Virus record (IMG/VR): IMGVR_UViG_3300026877_000062
Coordinates: 1-17,523 of that record
Strand: one strand, 5' to 3'
DNA length: 17,523 nt
In this document: positions 3-17,523 of the stretch, piece after piece
How the letters are laid out: every line of letters starts with the position of its first letter
Position numbering within the stretch: position 1 is the stretch's first letter
The notes under the pieces: generated by a model
Told to the model about the DNA's origin: nothing
Databases searched by the model: none
What the model saw: the letters and a program-made list of their open reading frames with translations, nothing else
Translations under genes and position numbers: made by a program

Positions 3-626
3 CACTTTGCGTTCGTTTCCTACGTTCTCACACCGTTTTCCTTTCAATACCTCTTCTGGTCTCTCCAACTAGAAGAATGGATGTACTTAGCTATCCCCTT
101 CATTCATGCGATAAGTGATAAATGGAAGTTTTACGTCGCAACATCGCTAATTGTAGTGACGTTAATATATAGTGCATTTATCGTCTTCCTTCCTTACGAC
201 GAGTTTCACTTACTTTACTTTATGCCTCCCTTCTGGTTGGGGGCGTATGGGTGGGGGATAATTGCATACCTTTTGAAGAAGAGGGGTTATAGACCGGGAA
301 ATATACATTATATTATACTGGGATTACTGTTTGTGCTCTACGTTACATTAAACGCCCACAACGAGATAGCTTATGAGTTCTTCACGCGGTTCCTGATTTA
401 TAACCTGGCGTTACCCGCTTTCGCCCTCCTTATTCTGAACCCGCCCAGGGTACTTAGTCGTGTAACAGTCTTCTTAGGCGAGGTGAGCTATGGAGTTTAC
501 CTGTGGACTTTGCTGTTTCAAGAACTTTTTGGGGTAAGTGGAATACTTTACGGCGTCCTAACTGCAATTGCTACAGAGTTTCCGTTGAGAAGAAAGGAAA
601 TAACAAAAAGGGTAATGGAAGTGTAA
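3..626 (+). CDS. Acyltransferase-3 (OafA/YrhL-like) membrane O-acyltransferase, 5'-truncated by the window edge
   Basis: The frame is open from position 3. It reads FWSLQLEEWMYL upstream of and across the listed ATG (family motif WSLxxEEQFY) and FLGEVSYGVYLW (family motif LGxxSYxxYLxH). Multiple hydrophobic segments are present. Confidence 0.8.
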   Translation, partial: HFAFVSYVLTPFSFQYLFWSLQLEEWMYLAIPFIHAISDKWKFYVATSLIVVTLIYSAFIVFLPYDEFHLLYFMPPFWLGAYGWGIIAYLLKKRGYRPGNIHYIILGLLFVLYVTLNAHNEIAYEFFTRFLIYNLALPAFALLILNPPRVLSRVTVFLGEVSYGVYLWTLLFQELFGVSGILYGVLTAIATEFPLRRKEITKRVMEV

Positions 627-644
627 CTTAATTGGGGGTATTCT

Positions 645-834
645 CACGTCCCTTTATTGAAGATTACGATTACTTATGTGCAGCACGATGACTATTGATA
701 TGAATTCTTGCTTGCGTGCAAAATATAACTTATTGATCTTATTTGTTGCTTATGTGCGAAGGTAAAATTATTGAGAAATTCCTTTGCTTATGTGCAGACT
801 ACTAATTATTGAAATGATTCCTTGCTTATGTGCA
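645..834 (-). repeat. Orphan TIGR-like dual-repeat guide array (5 units)
   Basis: On the + strand, 13-nt repeats TTRCTTRYGTGCR at 670, 708, 746, 784 and 822 alternate with YTATTGA at 654, 692, 730, 768 and 806. All spacers are 9 nt and the period is exactly 38 nt. The repeats match the 3414-4341 array. Strand is inferred from the main array. Confidence 0.9.
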
Positions 835-907
835 ATAGGAGTACCCTCAATACTAGATAATAATCTCTGGCTTTTTATTTTTTAGCTTTCTTTCCGTGTT
901 ATCTTTT

Positions 908-1279
908 ATGGGTATATTAGAAGCTTATAAAGCGCTGAAGGACATAAAATACAGAGTTTCGAGTAATAATAAATCACTTCAAATAGTTGAAGCAAAAGAA
1001 AACCACGTGATGATATGCAGGGGGGATACATGCTTTGAGTTCTTTAAACCTGAAAAGCAAGGTAAATACTACGCAGTACCTGTTATAAAATGGAATGGGA
1101 ACGGTAGCAAGTTCAAAAGTATGGAAAAGAAGTACATAGCGCTGAGCGACTTAAATTATTATACAAACTCATCTTCCTTTAAAGACTTCGCCGACAAGAT
1201 GAAAAAAATTAAAGAAGTTGAGGAGGATCAAGCTAGATTATTAAAGTTATTCGATTATTTGCATCAAATGTTTATCTGA
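908..1279 (+). CDS. Hypothetical protein (probable start ATG 908 rather than GTG 896)
   Basis: ORF track. A T-rich TATA-like stretch lies about 25-35 nt upstream of ATG 908. No recognisable motif. Confidence 0.6.
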   Translation: MGILEAYKALKDIKYRVSSNNKSLQIVEAKENHVMICRGDTCFEFFKPEKQGKYYAVPVIKWNGNGSKFKSMEKKYIALSDLNYYTNSSSFKDFADKMKKIKEVEEDQARLLKLFDYLHQMFI

Positions 1280-1865
1280 ACTCTACCGGTAAGCCATTTA
1301 CCATAATTATTTTCCTATTAGTCCACGTTACCGATTTTATTCTCTTTTTCCCTTTCATTAAACGTCTGACGTTATTAAATGCTATAGGTAAATAAGTATC
1401 ACTTATATCTATCATTACCCCAACACCCATATCACGATTAACTAGTTTAATTAGGCCATTCTCAAGAAGTACTCCCGCTATAGCTTCACCTTCACTTATA
1501 TGATGATTAAACACACCCTCTACGATGTGTTTAAACCAATAGGCTTCAATATACCTTAACCTCCTAATAGGCCCGCAAATAGTTATAAATGGATATAAAT
1601 AATTCGGACTATCTAACCCTAAATAATACCTGTAACATACATGCTCTTTCACCCATTTTTTGCCCTCAAGGTAAAAATCTCCACTGTATAATCTCTTCAT
1701 GAAAAACCTGACTAAGTCTACCCCTTCGTTTGTTAAGTAGTAATCTTTTACTCTATCTGGTACTTTTCCGTCATAATACAACATTTCGTACCGCGTTACC
1801 AAATAGTCATATTTACTTGTCCATTCTAACCATTTAATCTCTTCTTTAAAGTATAGACCTATCAT
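1272..1865 (-). CDS. Hypothetical protein
   Basis: 197-aa ORF preceded by a GGGTGA Shine-Dalgarno site. Confidence 0.7.
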   Translation of the reverse strand: MIGLYFKEEIKWLEWTSKYDYLVTRYEMLYYDGKVPDRVKDYYLTNEGVDLVRFFMKRLYSGDFYLEGKKWVKEHVCYRYYLGLDSPNYLYPFITICGPIRRLRYIEAYWFKHIVEGVFNHHISEGEAIAGVLLENGLIKLVNRDMGVGVMIDISDTYLPIAFNNVRRLMKGKKRIKSVTWTNRKIIMVNGLPVEFR

Positions 1866-1947
1866 TTTCTCACCCCTATGTTGAATAATGCTAACAGAAT
1901 ATTAAAAAGAAAGGGGGCGTAAAGTCTCACAGGCGGGAAGCCGTCAG

Positions 1948-2256
1948 CTAAGCGCCGTATGTCTGTTGTCTCCAGTACCAGTAGTACGTTAGTGAGATTA
2001 CAACTATACCGAGGGCAATGAGTACGGCAACTGCATATTGATTTGAAAGAACTGCCAGGATGTAACTATAAACCACATAAAGGTCTTGATAAATGGCTAA
2101 AGTCCATGAAACCTGAGGAGAAGGCGCAGAAGATACCATGTCTTTAACAGGATTAAGGACAAACGATATACCCTGCAGTATGGAGGAGAAGATGAAAATC
2201 GCAAATAAGGCTATTACTATTATCGATACAATCGAGATTTGTTCCTGTTGTGCCAT
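1948..2256 (-). CDS. Small hydrophobic membrane/virion protein
   Basis: 102 aa with hydrophobic helices at both ends. Co-oriented with the candidate capsid gene. Confidence 0.6.
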   Translation of the reverse strand: MAQQEQISIVSIIVIALFAIFIFSSILQGISFVLNPVKDMVSSAPSPQVSWTLAIYQDLYVVYSYILAVLSNQYAVAVLIALGIVVISLTYYWYWRQQTYGA

Positions 2257-2277
2257 AAAAAAGAATCCGTAAATACA

Positions 2278-2547
2278 CTAATAAATAAAAACACGTTCTC
2301 CCTTCCTCAGTTGACGTAGATACCTCCTAGCTTTCTCTCTTGCTAATTCGTCAGCCGTTATCTTCTCGAGGAACGCTAGTCTGGCCTTCGCTAAGTCGTC
2401 ATCCATCTTAATGACGTTACACTCGTGGTCATACGTGTAACCTCTTCTCAAGTCCCTCATTATCATGTCTGGTATTTGCCAATCGTGAGTAACTAAAATA
2501 CTTTCCCTTCTATAGTAACAACTCCTTCTTCCCTTATAAATGTTCAC
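2278..2547 (-). CDS. Small basic protein, possibly nucleic-acid binding
   Basis: 89 aa, Arg/Lys-rich, GTG start. Lies between two hydrophobic virion-like genes. Confidence 0.55.
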   Translation of the reverse strand: MNIYKGRRSCYYRRESILVTHDWQIPDMIMRDLRRGYTYDHECNVIKMDDDLAKARLAFLEKITADELAREKARRYLRQLRKGERVFIY

Positions 2548-2587
2548 AAAAAGAAGTAGGAGAAAAAGTTAAAAAATAAAATTTAGC

Positions 2588-3028
2588 TTAGAACGTATCT
2601 GTGGACTTCATCAAGTACCTTATAACGAATATCAATGCTACGATTATTAGCACTACTACGAGGATCTGGAATATTGACCCTAAAGTTGGCGCTATTGGTG
2701 AAACGAAGTTGTAGTTGGCAGGGATTTTGACGGCAGTAGTGTTAAAGACGTTAAGGATATAAATGCCGACACCACTTACGATTGATACTGTTACCGCACC
2801 TACGACCAATACTACGATAGCTATTATTATGTATTTAAACTTGTCCTTATAATTATCGTCGTCGTCGGCCATCATTATCGGTAACCTAGTCGCTAGACTC
2901 ATGGCTGCGCTGCTTAGACTAATGAACATCGTCCTTATCGACATTATTACGTTGAGCAGTAGGCTTACTATGAATATTCTTACTACCGGGTTTAGTTGAG
3001 TGGATCTCATTGTAATAAGAGTTAACAT
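2588..3028 (-). CDS. Candidate major capsid protein precursor (two-helix hydrophobic hairpin, spindle-shaped-virus-like)
   Basis: N-terminal leader, then an acidic linker (ADDDDNYKDK), then two long hydrophobic helices joined by a loop with an N-T-T sequon. This is the same layout as fusellovirus VP1 precursors. The call rests on architecture, not on an alignment. Confidence 0.45.
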   Translation of the reverse strand: MLTLITMRSTQLNPVVRIFIVSLLLNVIMSIRTMFISLSSAAMSLATRLPIMMADDDDNYKDKFKYIIIAIVVLVVGAVTVSIVSGVGIYILNVFNTTAVKIPANYNFVSPIAPTLGSIFQILVVVLIIVALIFVIRYLMKSTDTF

Positions 3029-3054
3029 GCAGATTAAAAAATATACTAAAACGA

Positions 3055-3360
3055 CTATATACCTCTAGCTCCGATAACTATTCTATCTTTCTGCAACCTA
3101 TTACTATATAATACAATTATTGAACAATCAGTCCTTATTCTAATTAATTCGTTTTTGATTGTATTGCCTAAATCATCGTTACTGATTGGTAATATAACAA
3201 GAACTTCACTTACATCTTTAGGCAGTATGAGGTTAAAGAACTTCGTATAATCAGAAATTATCCTTAAGCTATAACTTTTAAGGTTGGAAATCTCTCTGCT
3301 TCTTGCTACAGTCATAATGAAGTCTTCGAGGTTTCTAATATCGGCAGAATTAGCTAGCAT
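3055..3360 (-). CDS. Sulfolobales conserved protein, possibly DUF4898-like
   Basis: 101 aa with an AGGAG SD and a TTTTAAAA TATA upstream. ISDYTKFFNLILP resembles my recollection of this family. Confidence 0.5.
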   Translation of the reverse strand: MLANSADIRNLEDFIMTVARSREISNLKSYSLRIISDYTKFFNLILPKDVSEVLVILPISNDDLGNTIKNELIRIRTDCSIIVLYSNRLQKDRIVIGARGI

Positions 3361-3413
3361 AACTCCTTAATTAACATTTTGCTTTTTAAAATTTATGTGT
3401 TCTATTCTTGAGA

Positions 3414-4341
3414 TTACTCGTGTGCAGTTCGCCTGTTATTGAGGTTTTGCCTTACTTATGTGTGCATAAGGTAAATTACCGAGAAATTCCTTTGCTTGTG
3501 TGCAGTTCGTCAATTATTAAATACTTTTGTTGCTTATATGCAAAGGTCGTCTTATCTACTTCCTTTATTGCTTATGTGCAGAGACTGGATTATTGAGATT
3601 TGGTTACCTGCTTATATGCAATCCGTGGATTATTGATTTACCATCTTGCTTATGTGCAATTATCGGCTTATTGACTTCTTATTTTGCTTGTGTGCAACGG
3701 CGTCATTATTGAGTCGATTTTTTGCTTATATGCGATTACTAACTTATTTATAAGATTTGTTGCTCATGTACATTAATAAATTTATCGAGGTGCAATTGGA
3801 TTCTTGTTTAATAACATCCTTTGCTGATGTGCAATCTATTTCTTATTAAGTATTCCTATTGTTGCTTGTTTGCAGCTATACTATTATTGAAATAGTTTCT
3901 TGCTTATGTGCAAGCACTAACTTATTTATAAGATTTTTTGCTTATGTGCATATCCACTATTATTGAAGTTTGCTCTTGCTTGGATGCATATGGTGTGCAA
4001 TGACAGTCTTATTGAATGGATGTTTTGCTGGTGTGCATGAGCGATTTTATTAAAACTCCTTACTGCTTGTATGCAAGTAAACCTTTATTGATGATGTCGT
4101 TTGCTTATGTGCAGAGGATAACTTATTGACTTCCTTGTTTGCTTATATGCATACTTATCTTTATTGAATTACCGAATTGCTTGTGTGCAAATAATATGTT
4201 ATCGATCCTTTCCTTTGCTTGTGTGCAGTCGTTTTTTTATTGAGATATATGGTTGCTTGTGTGCAATAGCGATTTTATTGAATTCTTATCTTGCTTATGT
4301 GCAATGCCTATCTTATCGACACGAACTATTGCTCATGTGCA
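3414..4341 (-). repeat. TIGR-like dual-repeat guide-RNA array (~23 complete units plus 2 damaged junctions)
   Basis: The + strand unit is TTGCTTRTRTGCA-N9-TTATTGA-N9, period 38 nt, with about 26 long-repeat copies (two of them partial). On the - strand it reads TGCAYAYAAGCAA-N9-TCAATAA-N9. It begins 1 nt after the stop codon of the 4343-5374 gene. Confidence 0.93.
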
Positions 4342-4342
4342 G

Positions 4343-5374
4343 TCATTCAATAACTTTTTTCTTCTTAAGCCATTCCACCACCTCATCTCTGTTTATTCCT
4401 AACTCTTCTATTACCTTTTCAAATTTCGCTTTATATTTAGTCGTTTTTATATCTATATAGTAGTCAGTCACAGGACCTATTATAAAGTCCTCATGTTTCC
4501 TTATTACTTCGTATTCCTTCCCTAGCACTACCTTATATGCTTCAGTTAGTGGCACTCCTTCTCTGTAGTGTAATGATATGGCAAAATACTGAGATAGTAA
4601 TAAGGATATTGCTTTCCTGATTGCAGTTCTCTGTACTTTTAGCTTAGGCCAGTCTGGGTGTTTAGATATTACCTCTTCTTTGAAACTTTTTACTATCTTA
4701 GCGTAAACACCCCCAGCTAATATTAAATTGTTTGCCAGAATCCCTAACAGGAACGTTTTTACATTTCTGTTATATTTGACGTTTCTTGCTGCTATACCAA
4801 CTAGTTTAGTGTTATCATTAGGACACAGCCACCCTTGTTCAGAGGGGATAGCAGGTTTTCCATCCGAAGATTCGCCGGCATAGTAATAGTAGTTGCAACT
4901 AGGGCACTGGAACATTACTGCCAATCCAGCATACTTCCTAAACTTGTTAATGTTATACTGGAACTGAGGTGGATATGCGTAAACGATGAGTCTAGCAGCG
5001 TTAGCTGGTCCTATACCTTTGATAAACGCCAGGAAGTTGGTAAACTCTGAGAATTTAGTAACAGTATCAGCTATGAGTCCTTCGACCGTCTCTTGTTGTT
5101 TAAGTAATTCCATGTATCTTTGTACGAGTTCGTCAGACGGTGTTTCCTCAACTACCGTTACTTGTTCACCGCATATAGGACATTTATCACGTTTTTCGTC
5201 TTCCTTCAGTAGAACTGCATGTTTATTTTTACATACAGTATATCTTCTTAGAAAGACCCAATCACTTTTCTCCTTTTTCGCGCCTATACGGTTTCCGAAA
5301 GCCACCCTAATTTTTATCAGATCATCTCTGAACGCTACTAAATCCTTCAAATATATTAGATCATTTTCACTCAT
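4343..5374 (-). CDS. tasA: TIGR-associated (TasA-like) Nop/IS110-related RNA-binding protein, nuclease-less, with two Zn-ribbon insertions
   Basis: It starts with the IS110 coiled-coil motif (LKDLVAFRDDLIKIRVAFGNRI) and contains the Transposase_20/Nop helical motif IKGIGPANAARL...KFRKYAGL. There is no N-terminal DEDD/RuvC domain. Putative metal-binding pairs are CKNKH...CPIC and CPSC...CPND. It directly abuts the dual-spacer array. Confidence 0.82.
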   Translation of the reverse strand: MSENDLIYLKDLVAFRDDLIKIRVAFGNRIGAKKEKSDWVFLRRYTVCKNKHAVLLKEDEKRDKCPICGEQVTVVEETPSDELVQRYMELLKQQETVEGLIADTVTKFSEFTNFLAFIKGIGPANAARLIVYAYPPQFQYNINKFRKYAGLAVMFQCPSCNYYYYAGESSDGKPAIPSEQGWLCPNDNTKLVGIAARNVKYNRNVKTFLLGILANNLILAGGVYAKIVKSFKEEVISKHPDWPKLKVQRTAIRKAISLLLSQYFAISLHYREGVPLTEAYKVVLGKEYEVIRKHEDFIIGPVTDYYIDIKTTKYKAKFEKVIEELGINRDEVVEWLKKKKVIE

Positions 5375-5543
5375 CTTTTTCCTCGCCTCTAAAAATTACT
5401 ATCTTTTTCTCTAGGTCAAGATATGGTTCTAATTCATTCAAAAAAACCGCTACTTTCGCTGGAACTAATATATAATATACCTTTACTTCCTTTCCGTTTT
5501 TCTTTTTTACACTTTTTACGTACCACTTTAACTTGAGTTCCAT
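5367..5543 (-). CDS. Unannotated 58-aa protein, AbrB/SpoVT-like swapped-hairpin DNA-binding candidate
   Basis: Manual translation: MELKLKWYVKSVKKKNGKEVKVYYILVPAKVAVFLNELEPYLDLEKKIVIFRGEEKDE*. Its stop overlaps the tas start (ATGAGTGA). A BRE/TATA lies about 22 nt upstream. Confidence 0.65.
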   Translation of the reverse strand: MELKLKWYVKSVKKKNGKEVKVYYILVPAKVAVFLNELEPYLDLEKKIVIFRGEEKDE

Positions 5544-5564: not shown

Positions 5565-5579
5565 CTTAAAAAGTTTTTT
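5565..5579 (-). promoter_or_regulatory. Archaeal BRE-TATA promoter for the AbrB-like/tas/array operon
   Basis: The - strand reads AAAAAACTTTTTAAG about 22 nt upstream of ATG 5543, the spacing expected for a leaderless transcript. Confidence 0.6.
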
Positions 5580-5971
5580 CACCTATTTGCCAATCGTAAT
5601 AATAACTTGTGTAACATCATTACTATTATTAACGATGACATGGCAGCTATTAAAAACGACGTGACGTAATATATCAGTATATCATTTTCGGACGGCACAA
5701 CAACTACGTTGTAAAACCCTGGTTGCACGGTTGTGGAGTTCAAATATACACTCCCGTTTACTTCCAACACTCCCCCTCCGTCGACACTCAACGTCAAATA
5801 CGGACCCGAGGGGTAATAATAGTACTTCCCCGACGGCGTAAAGTTGTAAATACCAGGCTGGAAGTACATGTCGAAAGTATAGTAAGTCCTTGCGGTGAGC
5901 GTAGTCAGCGCTGAAGATATGGCAAGAGTTGAGAAGACGAAGACGACTGCGTAAAACACAACCTCCTTCAT
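5579..5971 (-). CDS. Membrane-anchored protein (N- and C-terminal TM helices, beta-rich middle), possible virion component
   Basis: 130 aa with a GGTGG SD and hydrophobic termini. N-x-S/T sequons NFT, NGS and NST. Confidence 0.65.
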   Translation of the reverse strand: MKEVVFYAVVFVFSTLAISSALTTLTARTYYTFDMYFQPGIYNFTPSGKYYYYPSGPYLTLSVDGGGVLEVNGSVYLNSTTVQPGFYNVVVVPSENDILIYYVTSFLIAAMSSLIIVMMLHKLLLRLANR

Positions 5972-6573
5972 CTTACCACCACGAAAGTAAACGAGGAGGA
6001 TTCTATATTTTCCCCCAATATTATAATATCCCTTTCCTCCCCTGCATATATACGAATCACGTTTTTATCGAAGATTACCTTTTTGACCTCCCTCGATGGA
6101 GGGAATGGTAAAGCGTAAAAGAACGGCATAGTCCCCGCGTTCACCAGTAGCAATGCGTATAGGTAGTCTTCGTACGGGGTTCTATTCTCTCGGCGAAGGA
6201 GCATTAAGAGGTCGTTATTACTATCGAAATAGTCAGGTTTTTTTACGTCAACCTTCTTCACCTCGATGTCCTTCTTTTTTTCTATTTCCTGTAGGTAAAC
6301 GAAGGGTTTTGTTGTTTCTTCAACGACATACGTGTACCTGAAATACTCATCTTCAATTTCAACAACGTTATCGGTAACTCTTGAGGACAGTGGGGTAGAG
6401 AACGTTGCTCTAAAACGAAATGAGGGAGAATCGTAAAACTCTCTGACTGCGGACAGAGCAAGAAATGTATCAATTGGTCTGTACTCCGTTTTCTTCAGTA
6501 ACTTGAGGTAATCTGAGACGACGTTTATTTTTACGTTATACGTAACTTCCAGATATGACAGTATGGTACCCAT
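5968..6573 (-). CDS. Hypothetical protein (probable start ATG 6573, not 6918)
   Basis: The upstream part of the listed ORF overlaps the + strand gene at 6656. ATG 6573 lies 18 nt after a TTTTTCTTATT motif shared with neighbouring genes. Confidence 0.6.
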   Translation of the reverse strand: MGTILSYLEVTYNVKINVVSDYLKLLKKTEYRPIDTFLALSAVREFYDSPSFRFRATFSTPLSSRVTDNVVEIEDEYFRYTYVVEETTKPFVYLQEIEKKKDIEVKKVDVKKPDYFDSNNDLLMLLRRENRTPYEDYLYALLLVNAGTMPFFYALPFPPSREVKKVIFDKNVIRIYAGEERDIIILGENIESSSFTFVVVR

Positions 6574-6655
6574 AAATTTAAGATGAGTTCCAATAAGAAA
6601 AACCTGAAGCGGGAAGGAAATCAGATTTTTCTTATTATACCTTTTTCTTTTTAAC

Positions 6656-7291
6656 ATGAACCCGCCTACAAGAATCGAAATAATAATATTAATTGTACTT
6701 TTAGTAGTCCTAGTCATGTTATTAGAGTACATTACATATACTAAGTTAAAATTAAGATGTCGTGAGATATTAAGACTTGAAATGATTGCATTAAAATTAG
6801 TAATTATTGATATGTTACACATTACTCTATTATGGCTAGTTATGACTTTACCACTAATTGGTATCGCTGTATTTACCGAGCTATCTGTGGTATTCGTAAT
6901 AGACTTGATACTCACCAAGGTGCGAAGTTTTCCACTTCTTGGTATTGAAATTGCGTACCTTTTCCTGTTTTTATATGCAGTTATGCTATTACTAGGTCGT
7001 TTCTTGGTTAAGTACGGATCTATCTACAAATTACCATTCGTATTTTTTGTGAGAAACGATGTCAGACAGTTCTTAAGAAAACACCAATATATACACATGG
7101 CACTGTTCGCAGGTTCTATAACGTACATCGCGATAATTATCGACCTTTTGATAATGCTCGTAGATGCTCCCTCGCCTTTATCAAAAGAGGTTATAGGCAT
7201 AATTACTGCACTTCTGCTCATTGAGGTTCTGCCTAATAAAAAATATGAGAACGCAATAAAGCTCTGTAAAAAATTTACCAGCTGTGATTAA
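6656..7291 (+). CDS. Multi-pass membrane protein
   Basis: 211 aa with about 5-6 hydrophobic segments. TTTTTCTTATT motif 19 nt upstream. Confidence 0.65.
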   Translation: MNPPTRIEIIILIVLLVVLVMLLEYITYTKLKLRCREILRLEMIALKLVIIDMLHITLLWLVMTLPLIGIAVFTELSVVFVIDLILTKVRSFPLLGIEIAYLFLFLYAVMLLLGRFLVKYGSIYKLPFVFFVRNDVRQFLRKHQYIHMALFAGSITYIAIIIDLLIMLVDAPSPLSKEVIGIITALLLIEVLPNKKYENAIKLCKKFTSCD

Positions 7292-8956: not shown

Positions 8957-9135
8957 GCAGGATAATAGAGCGACTGTTGGTAGATGAGATGAAGGAGGAG
9001 TGCATAGATTACATCAGCGAAGATGACATCAATTACATTATACTATTCCTGGAAACCGGCGAAAGAAGAAAAAGCAAACTCGTCGAATGCCTAGGTGGTT
9101 ACGATGAGATTAGAAGATTATCAGAGCTATTATAA
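8941..9135 (+). CDS. Small acidic hypothetical protein
   Basis: 64 aa with a GGGTGA SD upstream. Confidence 0.65.
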   Translation: MEEKVSRIIERLLVDEMKEECIDYISEDDINYIILFLETGERRKSKLVECLGGYDEIRRLSELL

Positions 9136-9880
9136 CGTTTTACTTCCGATTTATCAGAAAATTATGGTACCGCAAACCAGGGGAGAGGGGTGGAACGTCC
9201 TATCACGTTTGGCTCACGATTTCCATTACAACCCCCTCGTCTGGTTCATAAGCAACGCTGTCAAACCTAAGGACTATTACACGCACGACGAGGTGATTGT
9301 CTACGGCGAGCCGGGGAGCGGTAAGACTAGTTACGTAATTCAGTCGATGCTTTACGTATATGAGGACGTGAGGGAAGTCAGGAGAAGGGTGGTGTTTGAC
9401 GTTGATGACCTAAAACAGCTACTGGAGAACATTAGGGACGGGCAACGGTATGACGTTGTACTTTTTGACGACCCTTCTGCAATAGGACTGTCTTCGACTT
9501 GGAACATGAGAAGTGCAGCAGAGAAGAGGAAGATGCTTGAGCTCTTTGACGCTTTCGTCTACGTAAAGGATTTTATATCGCTCATAATCTTCACAGTTCC
9601 ACGGCTGATAGGTGTAGCTAAATTCTTTCGCGACATCGCTACATGGAGGGTCCAAGTAAAGAAAGAAGGGAAGGTAATTTTCACAAGGAGGGAAGTGGCG
9701 TCAACACGGTCCGGGGCCCTGAAGGAAATCGACACTCCGGTAATGTTTTACTACGTCAAAAACCTGAGGATGCCCAACGAGATTTGGGACGAAATGATGG
9801 AGAAGAGAAGGAAAATTATCGAGGAAAGGATAGAGAGGTTCAACCGGAACGGGTCGGGGGGTGACGAAAATGATGTTTAA
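9104..9880 (+). CDS. P-loop ATPase, resembling fusellovirus B251-type / Zot-like viral ATPases
   Basis: Walker A GEPGSGKT and Walker B VVLFDD, about 260 aa. ATG 9104 follows a GGTGG SD. Confidence 0.8.
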   Translation: MRLEDYQSYYNVLLPIYQKIMVPQTRGEGWNVLSRLAHDFHYNPLVWFISNAVKPKDYYTHDEVIVYGEPGSGKTSYVIQSMLYVYEDVREVRRRVVFDVDDLKQLLENIRDGQRYDVVLFDDPSAIGLSSTWNMRSAAEKRKMLELFDAFVYVKDFISLIIFTVPRLIGVAKFFRDIATWRVQVKKEGKVIFTRREVASTRSGALKEIDTPVMFYYVKNLRMPNEIWDEMMEKRRKIIEERIERFNRNGSGGDENDV

Positions 9881-10409
9881 GGACTACGTTGAGAAAATAC
9901 TCAAGGGCGAATTTGCCTACAAGAACGGACAACCGCAGCCCGTCACGATCTCGAAGATAATTGCGGAAAGGGAAGGAAAAGAGTACGTCCCTCCGGTTGT
10001 CGAAATACTACCGAAGTCATTCATTAACGCTTTTATCGTTTCAGAAGATGCGAACACGGAAGGGCTGAAAAAGTGGGCGAATAATGTAATGGCCCCTATC
10101 GAAAAGCCATATGTAATGAAGAACCCTAATGCCCTTTTTTTAGGCAATTGGTACATTTACTTGGAGGAGGGGATTAATGTAGGGTATATATATGCAGCAA
10201 TAACTTTTGGTAATGTCCCCGTCTTGCCCTCATTTTTCAGAGATGAGTTCGGTGAGTGCGCAGTATATTACAACGCTGAGTTGATATATCCGCATTTCAG
10301 GTTTTCCCTCGCCGACTTGTATAAAACACTGACTAGCGTTTTCAAGAATGAGAGGCTGTATTTCTCAAAGATTAATTGTTTGCTTGAATCTTCCTCTTTC
10401 TCTCTGTGA
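9870..10409 (+). CDS. Hypothetical protein
   Basis: ORF coupled to the ATPase. A GGGGGTGA SD precedes ATG 9870. Confidence 0.65.
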   Translation: MMFKDYVEKILKGEFAYKNGQPQPVTISKIIAEREGKEYVPPVVEILPKSFINAFIVSEDANTEGLKKWANNVMAPIEKPYVMKNPNALFLGNWYIYLEEGINVGYIYAAITFGNVPVLPSFFRDEFGECAVYYNAELIYPHFRFSLADLYKTLTSVFKNERLYFSKINCLLESSSFSL

Positions 10410-15241: not shown

Positions 15242-15643
15242 CTATTTATATCTACTTAGATGTGGTCCAACACCAAACGGGATAAACGTTACCATACGAA
15301 AAGGCATCATAGACCGTAACTCCTTCCATACTATCTCTCTACCCCTTACCTCAGTATCTATATAACATTCTACCAACCTCAGACAGACGAGGAGATCTTT
15401 AAGCACCTCCTTAACGCCTTTTTCGTCATTTACAATATGGACATTAAGCGTTATTTTATCCTCTTCTACATTAAGATATTTAATAGGAATATGGACATGG
15501 GGTTTTTTAGCTGCTTTGACTGGGCTGTACACGGCATAAGCACCCAACGTATTTTCGAAAATTAGCAGAGTCCCCGAACTTGTCTGTGCCACACCCGCAA
15601 GTGTCGTATCGCCTATAACCTCTACCTCAACGCCGTGAGTCAT
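15242..15643 (-). CDS. Hypothetical protein
   Basis: 133 aa. Its start overlaps the stop of the large ATPase. Confidence 0.65.
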   Translation of the reverse strand: MTHGVEVEVIGDTTLAGVAQTSSGTLLIFENTLGAYAVYSPVKAAKKPHVHIPIKYLNVEEDKITLNVHIVNDEKGVKEVLKDLLVCLRLVECYIDTEVRGREIVWKELRSMMPFRMVTFIPFGVGPHLSRYK

Positions 15644-17523
15644 TATTTTTTGAATACCCCATCACCTCCGTTTTTATACCCTAAAATGGGGAGGCATTCC
15701 TCAACCTTGTTCACGACGTTAGCTTCTCCCTTAAAGAGCTTCATTAACTGTTCCTCACTCACTTCGTTTCTAGCGTAGAGCTGATAAGATATTGCACCTA
15801 AGGAAAAGCCCATACAATTTTCAAACTCCTCTATCACCGGTTCACCGCTTTTTTCCTCTTCTTTCTTCTCTTCCTCTTTTGCCTCTTCTAACATCACCAG
15901 TAATTTAACACCGTCCTCCGTTATCGACCACAAGTAGACGTTGCCGGGTTTCTCGAACTCTACTAGACCACGGTTGGCTAACCCCATTAATAATTCCTTG
16001 GTCGTTGAAGTGTCAAGACTGTTATCGGACGCAATTTGTGAAGTCTTCAGTTTCTCCGTCCTACGTTCGTGCAAATACTTCAACAACTTTATCTCGACTT
16101 CCGATACTCCGAAGGACGCGATTACAAACTTCCTTAGAAGGTATTTTTTGAACAAGTCCAACGTTTCCTCATCTACCTTGTCCTTGTTCAGCAACATCGC
16201 TAGAATCTGTAGAGCAAATGAAGCAAAATTTGCTATCCTAAGTGACACAGTACGTGAGAACGGCAAAGATGATGTTAACATTTCAAATATACTTTTTGGA
16301 ACGTTAGCGAATCTAGGTGTATAAGTCATCCACGCTAAAAGTGCTAATTTCGTGATATCGTCGTAGTTGAACTCATCTTCGTTTCTATTTGTGTTCTCGT
16401 AAATCTTCTGTATTATTTTTTCGACGTCTTTCTTCTCTCTAATAATAGCCACGGGAATGAAACGTGACAGGATTTGAGTCTTCTGGCTGCTATCAGCTTC
16501 CTCAATGTTAACTACAGACGTTATAACGGACGGTGCATAATCCAGAAATATCTCAACTGGTTCACCATCTACTACAGTAAGTGACCCTCCACGTCCTGAT
16601 GTCATTAACATACTCAGCAACTTTAACGCCCTCAGGTTGGTAATCTCCTGCAAATACAACAATCTCCAGCGTAAGTAGTCAGACCCCTTTTTACCCAAAT
16701 AAACAACACTCTTTGGCGTAACATCAACAACGTTATAATGATAACCATCCGGTATCATGTGCACAATACTCTCAATCGCATGTGACTTTCCTGAGCCCGT
16801 ATCACCTAATACCAGGATACCAATCCTCTTCCTTTTTGTCGTGAACAACATTTTAAACGCCATTAAAGCAAGTAGCTTCACGTCCTCATCACCCACGTGA
16901 TATTCTTCGCTCTTTTCGATAAAGTACCAAATCCCTTTCTGCTTTATCTTCTCCCACAATTCCGGGTAAGCCTTGGCAAAGTATTCGTAGATCTTCACCC
17001 TCTTCTCATTCTTAGACTTCAGTGTTTGTAGCCGTGATTCTATTGACTCAAGTATTTCCTTTATTGACGGCTTGTAATCTGTTATTTTTGCAATCTTTTT
17101 CACTGCATCCTTCAACGAGTTTTCACCGCAAACGTAACCGTTCTTTGAAGGCTTACATTCAATCATTATGTCATTATATCTTATCTGAAAATAATATGCA
17201 GTAAAAATAACAACGTCTTCTCCCTCAAACCTCAATTCGTCTCCGAACGCTGAGAAATCTACAATTACTCTATGTCTACTTGAACCAATTATTTCTAAAT
17301 GTTTCGGATCTTCGTCAAATTTACTTGAATGTGTTTTTTCAACTGACTTTTCCGGCGTTTCCGGCGCAAATAACCTGCCTGTTTCGGTTTTTCCATCTGC
17401 GCCGGGATTTTTTGTTTCCGGCGCAGATTTACGTACTGGTCTAGTATTTTGTAAATCTGCGCCGGGATTAGTATTTTTTATCATTGCGCCGGGTTTAGAA
17501 TTTGTATCATTTACGCCTGGTAA
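15643..17523 (-). CDS. Large P-loop ATPase/helicase (MCM-like AAA+) with winged-helix domain, probable replication protein; probably 5'-truncated
   Basis: Walker A GDTGSGKS, Walker B-like LLYLQE and Arg-finger-like ILSRF. A wHTH-like segment runs KTSQIAS...LANRGLV...WSITEDG. The frame stays open from ATG 17484 to the window edge (LPGVNDTNSKPGA). Confidence 0.75.
   Translation of the reverse strand, partial: LPGVNDTNSKPGAMIKNTNPGADLQNTRPVRKSAPETKNPGADGKTETGRLFAPETPEKSVEKTHSSKFDEDPKHLEIIGSSRHRVIVDFSAFGDELRFEGEDVVIFTAYYFQIRYNDIMIECKPSKNGYVCGENSLKDAVKKIAKITDYKPSIKEILESIESRLQTLKSKNEKRVKIYEYFAKAYPELWEKIKQKGIWYFIEKSEEYHVGDEDVKLLALMAFKMLFTTKRKRIGILVLGDTGSGKSHAIESIVHMIPDGYHYNVVDVTPKSVVYLGKKGSDYLRWRLLYLQEITNLRALKLLSMLMTSGRGGSLTVVDGEPVEIFLDYAPSVITSVVNIEEADSSQKTQILSRFIPVAIIREKKDVEKIIQKIYENTNRNEDEFNYDDITKLALLAWMTYTPRFANVPKSIFEMLTSSLPFSRTVSLRIANFASFALQILAMLLNKDKVDEETLDLFKKYLLRKFVIASFGVSEVEIKLLKYLHERRTEKLKTSQIASDNSLDTSTTKELLMGLANRGLVEFEKPGNVYLWSITEDGVKLLVMLEEAKEEEKKEEEKSGEPVIEEFENCMGFSLGAISYQLYARNEVSEEQLMKLFKGEANVVNKVEECLPILGYKNGGDGVFKK
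17351..17493. repeat. Cluster of CCGGCGCA repeats in alternating orientation, including a 15-bp perfect inverted repeat
   Basis: CCGGCGCA at 17361 and 17418; TGCGCCGG at 17398, 17458 and 17485. CCGGCGCAGATTTAC (17418-17432) pairs with GTAAATCTGCGCCGG (17451-17465). Confidence 0.8.

Follow-up and report, generated by a model that had tools for sequence, protein, structure and literature searches.

A second TIGR-type array at a fixed slot apart from the tas gene in a relative of Sulfolobales viruses

The window analyzed here is a stretch of DNA of 17,523 nucleotides, equivalent to IMG/VR contig 3300026877_000062, whose nearest GenBank relatives, the Sulfolobales viruses YNP1 and YNP2, share 76-77% DNA identity with parts of it. 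Besides a long array next to its tas gene, the window carries a genuine second array of the TIGR type, referred to below as the mini array, which occupies a fixed position apart from tas and is neither an assembly artefact nor a random new seed. The best explanation as a whole, which we consider rather probable, is that the mini array is a detached second TIGR array in an inherited slot, which would be expressed from a separate transcript, would depend on Tas provided in trans and would serve in repression. The first-pass annotation had proposed a satellite array acting in trans; judged from the sequence, a trans-acting satellite under separate control is a reasonable interpretation.

Architecture of the mini array and its slot

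The 13-nt edge repeats of the mini array start at positions 670, 708, 746, 784 and 822 on the plus strand, with a spacing of exactly 38 nt. Compared with the plus-strand consensus TTGCTTATGTGCA, they showed 0-2 mismatches, three of the five edges being off consensus. Upstream of each edge, a 9-nt spacer, a 7-nt loop (TTATTGA, once CTATTGA) and another 9-nt spacer were found; that is, two short repeats alternate with two 9-nt spacers, the feature of dual-repeat TIGR arrays. Scanning the window with a composite pattern made of the loop, nine variable positions and the edge, with up to three mismatches allowed, returned 24 matches compared with 0.00 expected from 200 shuffles. Five of these matches were located at 654-834 and 19 in the main array (3414-4341), which has the same repeat sequence and orientation as the mini array, and Tandem Repeats Finder also reported the 38-nt period at both arrays. 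A tandem repeat of a different kind, with a 27-nt unit in about three copies, was observed at the contig end (17438-17521), where it overlaps the start of a 613-aa ORF (15643-17484).

The mini array holds five edge and five loop repeats, but the complete edge-to-edge units number only four (670-834), since the one closest to the acyltransferase gene was broken by a deletion of 17 nt. The first "unit" (645-669) is without an upstream edge. When the window was aligned with its relatives L226, L221 and L296, in which the acyltransferase-side start of the array consists of a truncated edge, CCCCTTATGTGCA, and a spacer, precisely this terminal truncated edge and its spacer were missing from the window. 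The corresponding end of the mini array in contig L232 showed a separate loss of 11 nt, independent of the 17-nt deletion. The array proper (670-834, strand not assigned) therefore comprises five edges and four complete 38-nt units (spacer of 9, loop, spacer of 9 and edge of 13 nt), and the degraded end unit (627-669, given no strand) comprises a conserved short G/C hairpin region (GGGGG...CCC), the loop at 654-660 and one spacer. The first-pass annotation had described five units with the same 13-nt and 7-nt repeats, 9-nt spacers, 38-nt period and orientation as the main array; the repeats, the period and the orientation were confirmed, and the number of units bounded by edges on both sides was corrected to four. 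It had also named an assembly artefact as one of the findings that would speak against its proposal. Contig L229, which was assembled independently, contains the same four units in the same order, with 94.5% identity over 165 nt, and the mini array is therefore not an assembly artefact.

The left anchor of the slot is a gene fragment of the acyltransferase-3 family (Acyl_transf_3; 81-626, plus strand; Pfam E 4.8e-09), and the right neighbor is a 127-aa ORF without an informative Pfam match (896-1279, plus strand), called here the 896 gene. Neither neighbor is Tas-like, in agreement with the earlier statement that no Tas gene is adjacent. The distance from position 834 is 2.58 kb to the start of the main array at 3414 and 3.5 kb to the tas stop codon; adjacency to a Nop-domain Tas gene was found for the main array and not for the mini array.

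Between the mini array and the 896 gene, a 35-nt flank (835-869, given no strand; ATAGGRGTACCC...CTAGATAATAATCT, also recorded as ATAGGRGTACCC...TAGATAATAATCT) accompanies the mini array in relatives. It lies on the 896 side in most array-bearing contigs and is missing from the checked contigs with an empty slot, and a 61-nt tail beyond the mini array is 98-100% identical in L238 and L229. With minus-strand transcription this flank would be a leader, and with plus-strand transcription a trailer. Next to it, upstream of the 896 gene, lies an A/T-rich element with the core T5 A T6 (870-895, given no strand), which is kept in relatives without a mini array. From its sequence and position, the element is probably the TATA region of the 896 gene, and it might additionally drive divergent transcription or, by its T-tract, terminate that of the array. 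Scanning for sigma-70 promoters and hairpin terminators, which are bacterial models not applicable to archaea, yielded nothing useful. Small RHH-like ORFs on the minus strand were observed in the same slot in L012 (14870-15500) and L025 (6540-6818), as well as in the mini-array contigs L220, L221, L227, L246 and L284; such an ORF either replaces the mini array or precedes it, leaving about 30 nt to the first edge.

Occurrence in relatives and exchange of units

A survey anchored on the acyltransferase gene covered 16 viral and 80 metagenomic loci, which were classed by what comes after this gene. The slot up to the 896-gene homologue was fully covered in 28 contigs, of which 18 contain a mini array of 2-8 units, and four shorter contigs show the start of a mini array in the slot. 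The remaining 10 slot-covering contigs are without an array, some of them with a small RHH-like ORF instead. This comparison of presence and absence in relatives, which the first-pass annotation had put forward as a check, always placed the array in one fixed slot with a conserved flank and a conserved core of units, and gave no support to the earlier suggestion that units can be seeded at new loci. Given the fixed slot, the conserved flank and the conserved unit core, the mini array is therefore an old inherited locus.

Several other layouts were found among the relatives. YNP1 contains tas together with a single long array built of the window's repeats; both are missing from YNP2. A single array runs straight from the acyltransferase gene to tas in six contigs (L254, L256, L258, L274, L275 and L292), and the full layout of the window (mini array, block, main array and tas) is repeated in L232, L238 and L248. 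Contig 3300026885_000046 (37.5 kb) contains a 7-unit mini array in the usual slot, with tas about 12.8 kb away and the main array in the opposite orientation; its relocated, inverted cassette consists of the homologues of ORFs 5968-6918, 5579-5971 and 5367-5543, tas and the main array. The main array in L014 and L037 (IMGVR_UViG_3300026885_000046) adjoins homologues of the window genes at 9095-10409, one of which (9095-9877, 261 aa) carries the PHROGs label of a DnaA-like replication initiator. The mini-array contigs L221, L246, L284 and L226 have no tas within 2-4 kb past the block. Past the block in L226, only two three-edge array fragments about 400 bp apart were observed (9095-9681), with no tas in the last 1.4 kb, pointing to a main array that has been disrupted. 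The ends of L007 (IMGVR_UViG_3300005860_000274, 7.2 kb) are exact mirror images, each with tas and eight units in opposite orientation, and look like a hairpin-type assembly artefact.

The two arrays of the window are separated by a block of six genes (835-3400, 2.6 kb). The 896 gene is on the plus strand and the other five are on the minus strand, namely 1272-1865, 1948-2256, 2278-2547, a 146-aa membrane protein with a PHROG match as a virion structural protein (2588-3028) and a DUF4898 gene (3055-3360). A foreign insertion was considered as the origin of this block and rejected, given that its genes, including that of the virion structural protein, are conserved neighbors in YNP1, YNP2 and many contigs. 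The main array (3414-4341, given no strand) has about 24-25 edges, mostly in 38-nt phase, and ends 1 nt from the tas stop codon. Its units are degenerate at the tas-distal end (3414-3464), and its phase is broken at three points, where intervals of 61 nt (3760-3821), 41 nt (3821-3862) and 49 nt (3976-4025) replace the 38-nt step. A further, incomplete edge, TGTGCA, is located near 3995, and one unit is duplicated internally (3735-3759 and 3913-3937, 15/18 identical). The phase breaks, the partial edge and the duplicated unit, in the region of 3760-4037, look like scars of unequal recombination.

When the units of the mini arrays were compared, the core unit aaatataac/tcttatttg was letter-identical in about 10 contigs and one base off in two more, in contigs whose flanking genes share only 83-88% DNA identity. 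A core pair was found in about 12 contigs, consisting of this unit and its left neighbor xxxxxatga/tatgaattc, followed by the edge variant TTGCTTGCGTGCA. Units vary on both sides of the core, and turnover is therefore not polar, unlike that of CRISPR arrays. Most of the distinct mini-array units (70 of 76) are private to mini arrays, and the other six match units in main or single arrays of other genomes at 15 or more of 18 positions. The fourth unit of the window, aaggtaaaa/gaaattcct, is identical to a main-array unit of L248 (18/18), shares 16/18 positions with a unit of L271 and is near-identical to a unit in the main array of the window itself (3467-3491); it was also found in YNP1 and in L037, where it comes first after tas. 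The mini arrays of L282, L227 and L284 likewise contain units that match single-array units at 17-18 of 18 positions. Such units in common with main and single arrays point to array splitting or recombination, not to new seeding. An orthology of the mini array with the acyltransferase-proximal end of the single arrays was considered and found no support; the leaders differ, the units of the window are absent there, and the sharing concerns other mini arrays only.

Comparison of the window with L238 revealed 92-98% identity in the block (835-3400), 86% in the acyltransferase gene and 81% in tas, with no mini-array unit in common. Both arrays therefore look like recombination break points, and the block like a swappable recombination module bounded by the arrays. 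Spacer composition was examined in the window and its related loci, with 238 distinct units in all. The two spacers of a unit were found to differ: the plus-strand spacer preceding the edge is T-rich and G-poor at positions 5-8, and 81% of the units have a purine directly after the edge, a bias that may reflect target preference or RNA constraints.

Transcribed strand, Tas protein and proposed mode of action

The 38-nt unit (13 + 9 + 7 + 9) has an edge of 13 nt with an 8-nt gap and a loop of 7 nt with a 2-nt gap, and it departs from the canonical 36-nt unit of TIGRFinder (box C of 3, spacer of 9 and box D of 2, with 4-nt gaps). Repeats of 8-12 nt, with exceptions, are allowed in such arrays (Faure et al. 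2025, PMC12045711). On the minus strand, which is the tas-sense strand, the edge reads UG-CACAUAAG-CAA. It starts with a box D (UG), ends with a CNA box C, and can form a C:G pair and an adjacent inner G-C pair; a box D start, a CNA box C end and a C:G pair make up the published edge-repeat rule (Faure et al. 2025, PMC12045711). Both minus-strand edge motifs are on the lists of TIGRFinder, and the box and pair positions are 96-99% conserved in 246 edges from 13 loci. The loop on the minus strand, UCAAUAA, keeps the leading U and the final AA, its pair cannot be formed, and it does not follow the canonical box C/box D covariation in either orientation. Neither the edge nor the loop fits CNA on the plus strand. 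G:U wobbles in the 246 edges were balanced with respect to strand, with 5 and 7 variants on one side and 4 and 7 on the other, and Rfam returned no family at gathering score anywhere in the window, including the box C/D RNA models.

From these and the following features, we consider it fairly likely that the mini array is transcribed from the minus (tas-sense) strand and not from the plus strand. Counted for the minus strand were the fit of the edge to the box D and box C rules, the position of the main array directly at the tas stop codon, a placement known from expressed systems whose arrays lie downstream, and the location of the broken or degenerate units of both arrays on the same, tas-distal side. 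The least variable spacer positions in 57 homologous unit pairs, a6 and b6, were counted likewise; they correspond to position 4 of the minus-strand spacer, beside the published seed. Counted for the plus strand were the 5'-truncated first edge in relatives, the tidy units that this strand also gives, the T5-T6 tracts after both arrays (872-883 and 4355-4360) and a TATA-like run (3383-3391) about 25 nt before the first edge of the main array. The A/T elements that bear on the strand are also explicable as promoters of the 896 and 3055 genes or as Lys codons of tas.

The tas gene (4343-5374, minus strand) encodes a TasA-like protein of 343 aa, assigned by its fold using AlphaFold2 and Foldseek. 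Pfam gave no family for this protein, and a sequence search against PDB chains gave nothing meaningful (best E 0.48). Its weak PHROGs matches are labeled "transposase", which we take to mean IS110-type transposases. Hot-spring metagenomes contain 71 homologues at 59% identity or more, all unannotated. The AlphaFold2 model, built from 16 of these homologues, had a mean pLDDT of 88.4 and a pTM of 0.81. The best Foldseek match of this model was TasR (9mty; E 1.2e-4, probability 1.00, TM 0.47/0.54), followed by TasH (9w04/9vzx), likewise at a probability of 1.00, and then by IS621 bridge-RNA recombinases, a kinship that is expected for a Nop-domain Tas protein (Faure et al. 2025, PMC12045711).

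The predicted fold includes a Nop domain and a coiled-coil dimerization arm. The N-terminus opens directly with the long coiled-coil helix (3-30), and the only extra elements are two Cys-rich zinc-ribbon insertions (32-77 and 154-194). No nuclease family (HNH, RuvC) was found in Pfam or PHROGs, and no nuclease domain was recognizable. Since the protein begins with a coiled-coil helix and has two ribbons and no nuclease family, it was classed as TasA-like; a cryptic metal-finger nuclease is just conceivable. Dual-repeat Tas proteins cut their own tigRNA in the edge repeat via a C-terminal Tyr/His loop (Xu et al. 2026, 10.64898/2026.09.09.750476). The protein of the window has an unstructured stretch near the C-terminus (292-311) with an invariant H294 and the near-invariant Y305/Y306; by their location, these are candidate processing residues that may be equivalent to the Tyr/His dyad.

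With six unrelated genes between the mini array and tas, the mini array needs its own transcript or that of a neighbor and could use Tas only in trans; on either strand it is outside the tas transcript. The case for separate control is made stronger by contig 3300026885_000046, with its mini array some 12.8 kb away from tas and inverted relative to the main array. We propose that transcription would start from the conserved flank at 835-895 and run on the minus strand toward the acyltransferase gene. The short precursor would then be bound at its edge and loop repeats by a dimer of the single TasA-like protein, encoded 3.5 kb away, and would be cut in the edge repeats to give four 38-nt tigRNAs. 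Arrays reduced to 1-3 units are known to undergo processing as long as they have complete edges (Faure et al. 2025, PMC12045711). With each tigRNA as its guide, the nuclease-less Tas dimer would be directed to a DNA site of 18 bp, which is expected to consist of spacer B adjacent to the reverse complement of spacer A; only B+rc(A), taken on the true strand, is compatible with the 8-nt 3' overhang that has been reported. As this Tas is without a nuclease, the expected outcome is binding or repression, not cutting, and TasA proteins bind DNA and act as RNA-guided repressors (Xu et al. 2026, 10.64898/2026.09.09.750476). The mini array and the main array draw on one pool of units, and recombination within the arrays reshuffles the units and the block between them.

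Potential targets were searched for using both geometries, rc(A)+B and B+rc(A). The units of the window gave 18 matches in eight related genomes at up to three mismatches, compared with 16.0 expected, and no target beyond chance was found in the window itself. For the 238 distinct units, 36 and 18 matches were obtained in 835 kb of related contigs at up to two mismatches, compared with 17-62 for shuffled units, with none at 0-1 mismatch. The widely conserved unit matched 60 and more than 119 IMG/VR contigs in the two geometries, none of them from the hot-spring samples that hold these viruses. It also gave 43 matches in GTDB genomes, none in Sulfolobales. We regard the matches in both collections as unrelated background.

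Alternative readings and relation to known systems

The same observations were weighed for other readings of the locus. The mini array could be a non-functional relic, that is, the acyltransferase-side stump of an array split by the 2.6-kb block, drifting to loss and holding no useful guides. Such a split would agree with the six contigs in which a single array leads directly from the acyltransferase gene to tas, and with the 17-18/18 identity of units in L282, L227 and L284 to single-array units. Decay could also be read from the end unit, broken in the window by the 17-nt deletion and separately in L232 by the 11-nt loss, from the substitutions in three of the five edges, from the absence of the array in 10 of the 28 slot-covering contigs and from the lack of targets found in related viruses and contigs. 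However, the core unit stayed identical in about 10 contigs though their flanks differ by 12-17%, and the 38-nt phase of the mini array is perfect, compared with the three phase breaks of the main array. The 35-nt flank is conserved specifically in array-bearing contigs, and the 70 of 76 units private to mini arrays indicate a repertoire of their own and not a decaying copy. A relic seems to us a rather unlikely explanation, and we retain that of an inherited, detached array.

It is also conceivable that the main role of the mini array is not to guide its own Tas, and that it serves as a decoy for the Tas of co-infecting viruses or as a recombination hot spot for cassette swapping; we consider this improbable. 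The block of the window and L238, at 92-98% identity between an acyltransferase gene of 86%, a tas of 81% and two differing arrays, is what a hot spot would leave, as is the inverted and moved tas-array cassette of another contig, and the mini-array contigs L221, L246, L284 and L226 show no tas within 2-4 kb past the block. Nevertheless, any repeat array is expected to recombine at its repeats as a side effect, without this having to be its function. Conserved spacers, as seen in the core, would be unnecessary in a decoy, and the one long contig checked does encode tas. Finally, the repeats are A/T-rich and regularly phased, and a DnaA-like replication gene is located elsewhere in the window (9095-9877), as might be expected if they were no guide array at all and served to bind proteins at the DNA level (as iterons or an origin element), or if they were an assembly artefact. 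This is very improbable, given that the sequence, the phase and the two-repeat grammar are identical to those of the array abutting the Tas-fold gene, that the segments between the repeats vary among genomes and the repeats are fixed, as in guide arrays, and that about 20 contigs, assembled independently and coming from several samples, have this structure.

A TIGR array can thus persist for long away from tas, in a slot that is fixed, with a conserved flank of its own and units that are mostly private. The origin, growth and expression of TIGR arrays have been called an enigma (Faure et al. 2025, PMC12045711), and surveys so far have sought arrays around tas genes (Xu et al. 2026, 10.64898/2026.09.09.750476); finders centered on tas, and those looking for 36-nt units, will miss loci of this kind. 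No description of orphan TIGR arrays was found in the literature searched, and the word "orphan" is absent from both main TIGR papers; within that literature, it stands beside "tigRNA" in a single general review of genome engineering. The locus offers a natural test case for loading of Tas in trans, separate regulation of guide sets and recombination-driven array evolution. A wider proposal, which we make tentatively, is that detached TIGR arrays are a regular, selected feature of this lineage. They would have their own promoter and largely private guides, would use the same TasA in trans under separate regulation, and would act as recombination joints that exchange the structural-gene cassette and guide units between co-infecting viruses. 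If this wider proposal is true, the mini array would be the first orphan TIGR array described, and it would bear on how TIGR arrays are reshuffled. The arrangement is modestly novel and represents an incremental extension of the known TIGR-Tas system, not a new kind of system.

Medvedeva et al., in 2019, reportedly described mini-CRISPR arrays borne by Sulfolobales viruses and engaged in interviral targeting. Like orphan CRISPR and viral mini-CRISPR arrays, the mini array is a short guide array of an archaeal virus, located away from the effector gene, and it would rely on an effector in trans. The CRISPR grammar, in which a single repeat of about 25-36 nt alternates with spacers of comparable length, was not found here, where repeats of 13 and 7 nt alternate with 9-nt spacers. 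The effector family is likewise different and comes from the same virus, and no spacer match beyond chance was found in related viruses.

Closer similarity was found with the dual-repeat TIGR-Tas systems, including the array in Acidianus tailed spindle virus (Faure et al., Science 2025, PMC12045711). They share the tandem arrangement of alternating edge and loop repeats with two 9-nt spacers, a Nop-domain Tas beside a long array, an archaeal virus as carrier and, if the tas-sense strand is read, an edge of the form UG...CAA with a C:G and an inner G-C pair. The unit is different, with 36 nt and two repeats of about 9 nt in those systems and with 38 nt, a 13-nt edge and a 7-nt loop here; moreover, the mini array is without an adjacent Tas, and its loop does not mirror box C/box D of the edge. 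Arrays are known upstream, downstream or on both sides of tas (Xu et al. 2026, 10.64898/2026.09.09.750476). The systems of that study resemble the present one in their nuclease-less TasA, the self-processing Tyr/His loop being only a candidate here. Their arrays flank tas directly, whereas six genes (2.6 kb) intervene in the window, and about 12.8 kb together with an inversion in a relative; unlike them, the detached array described here has its own repertoire of units at a conserved slot.
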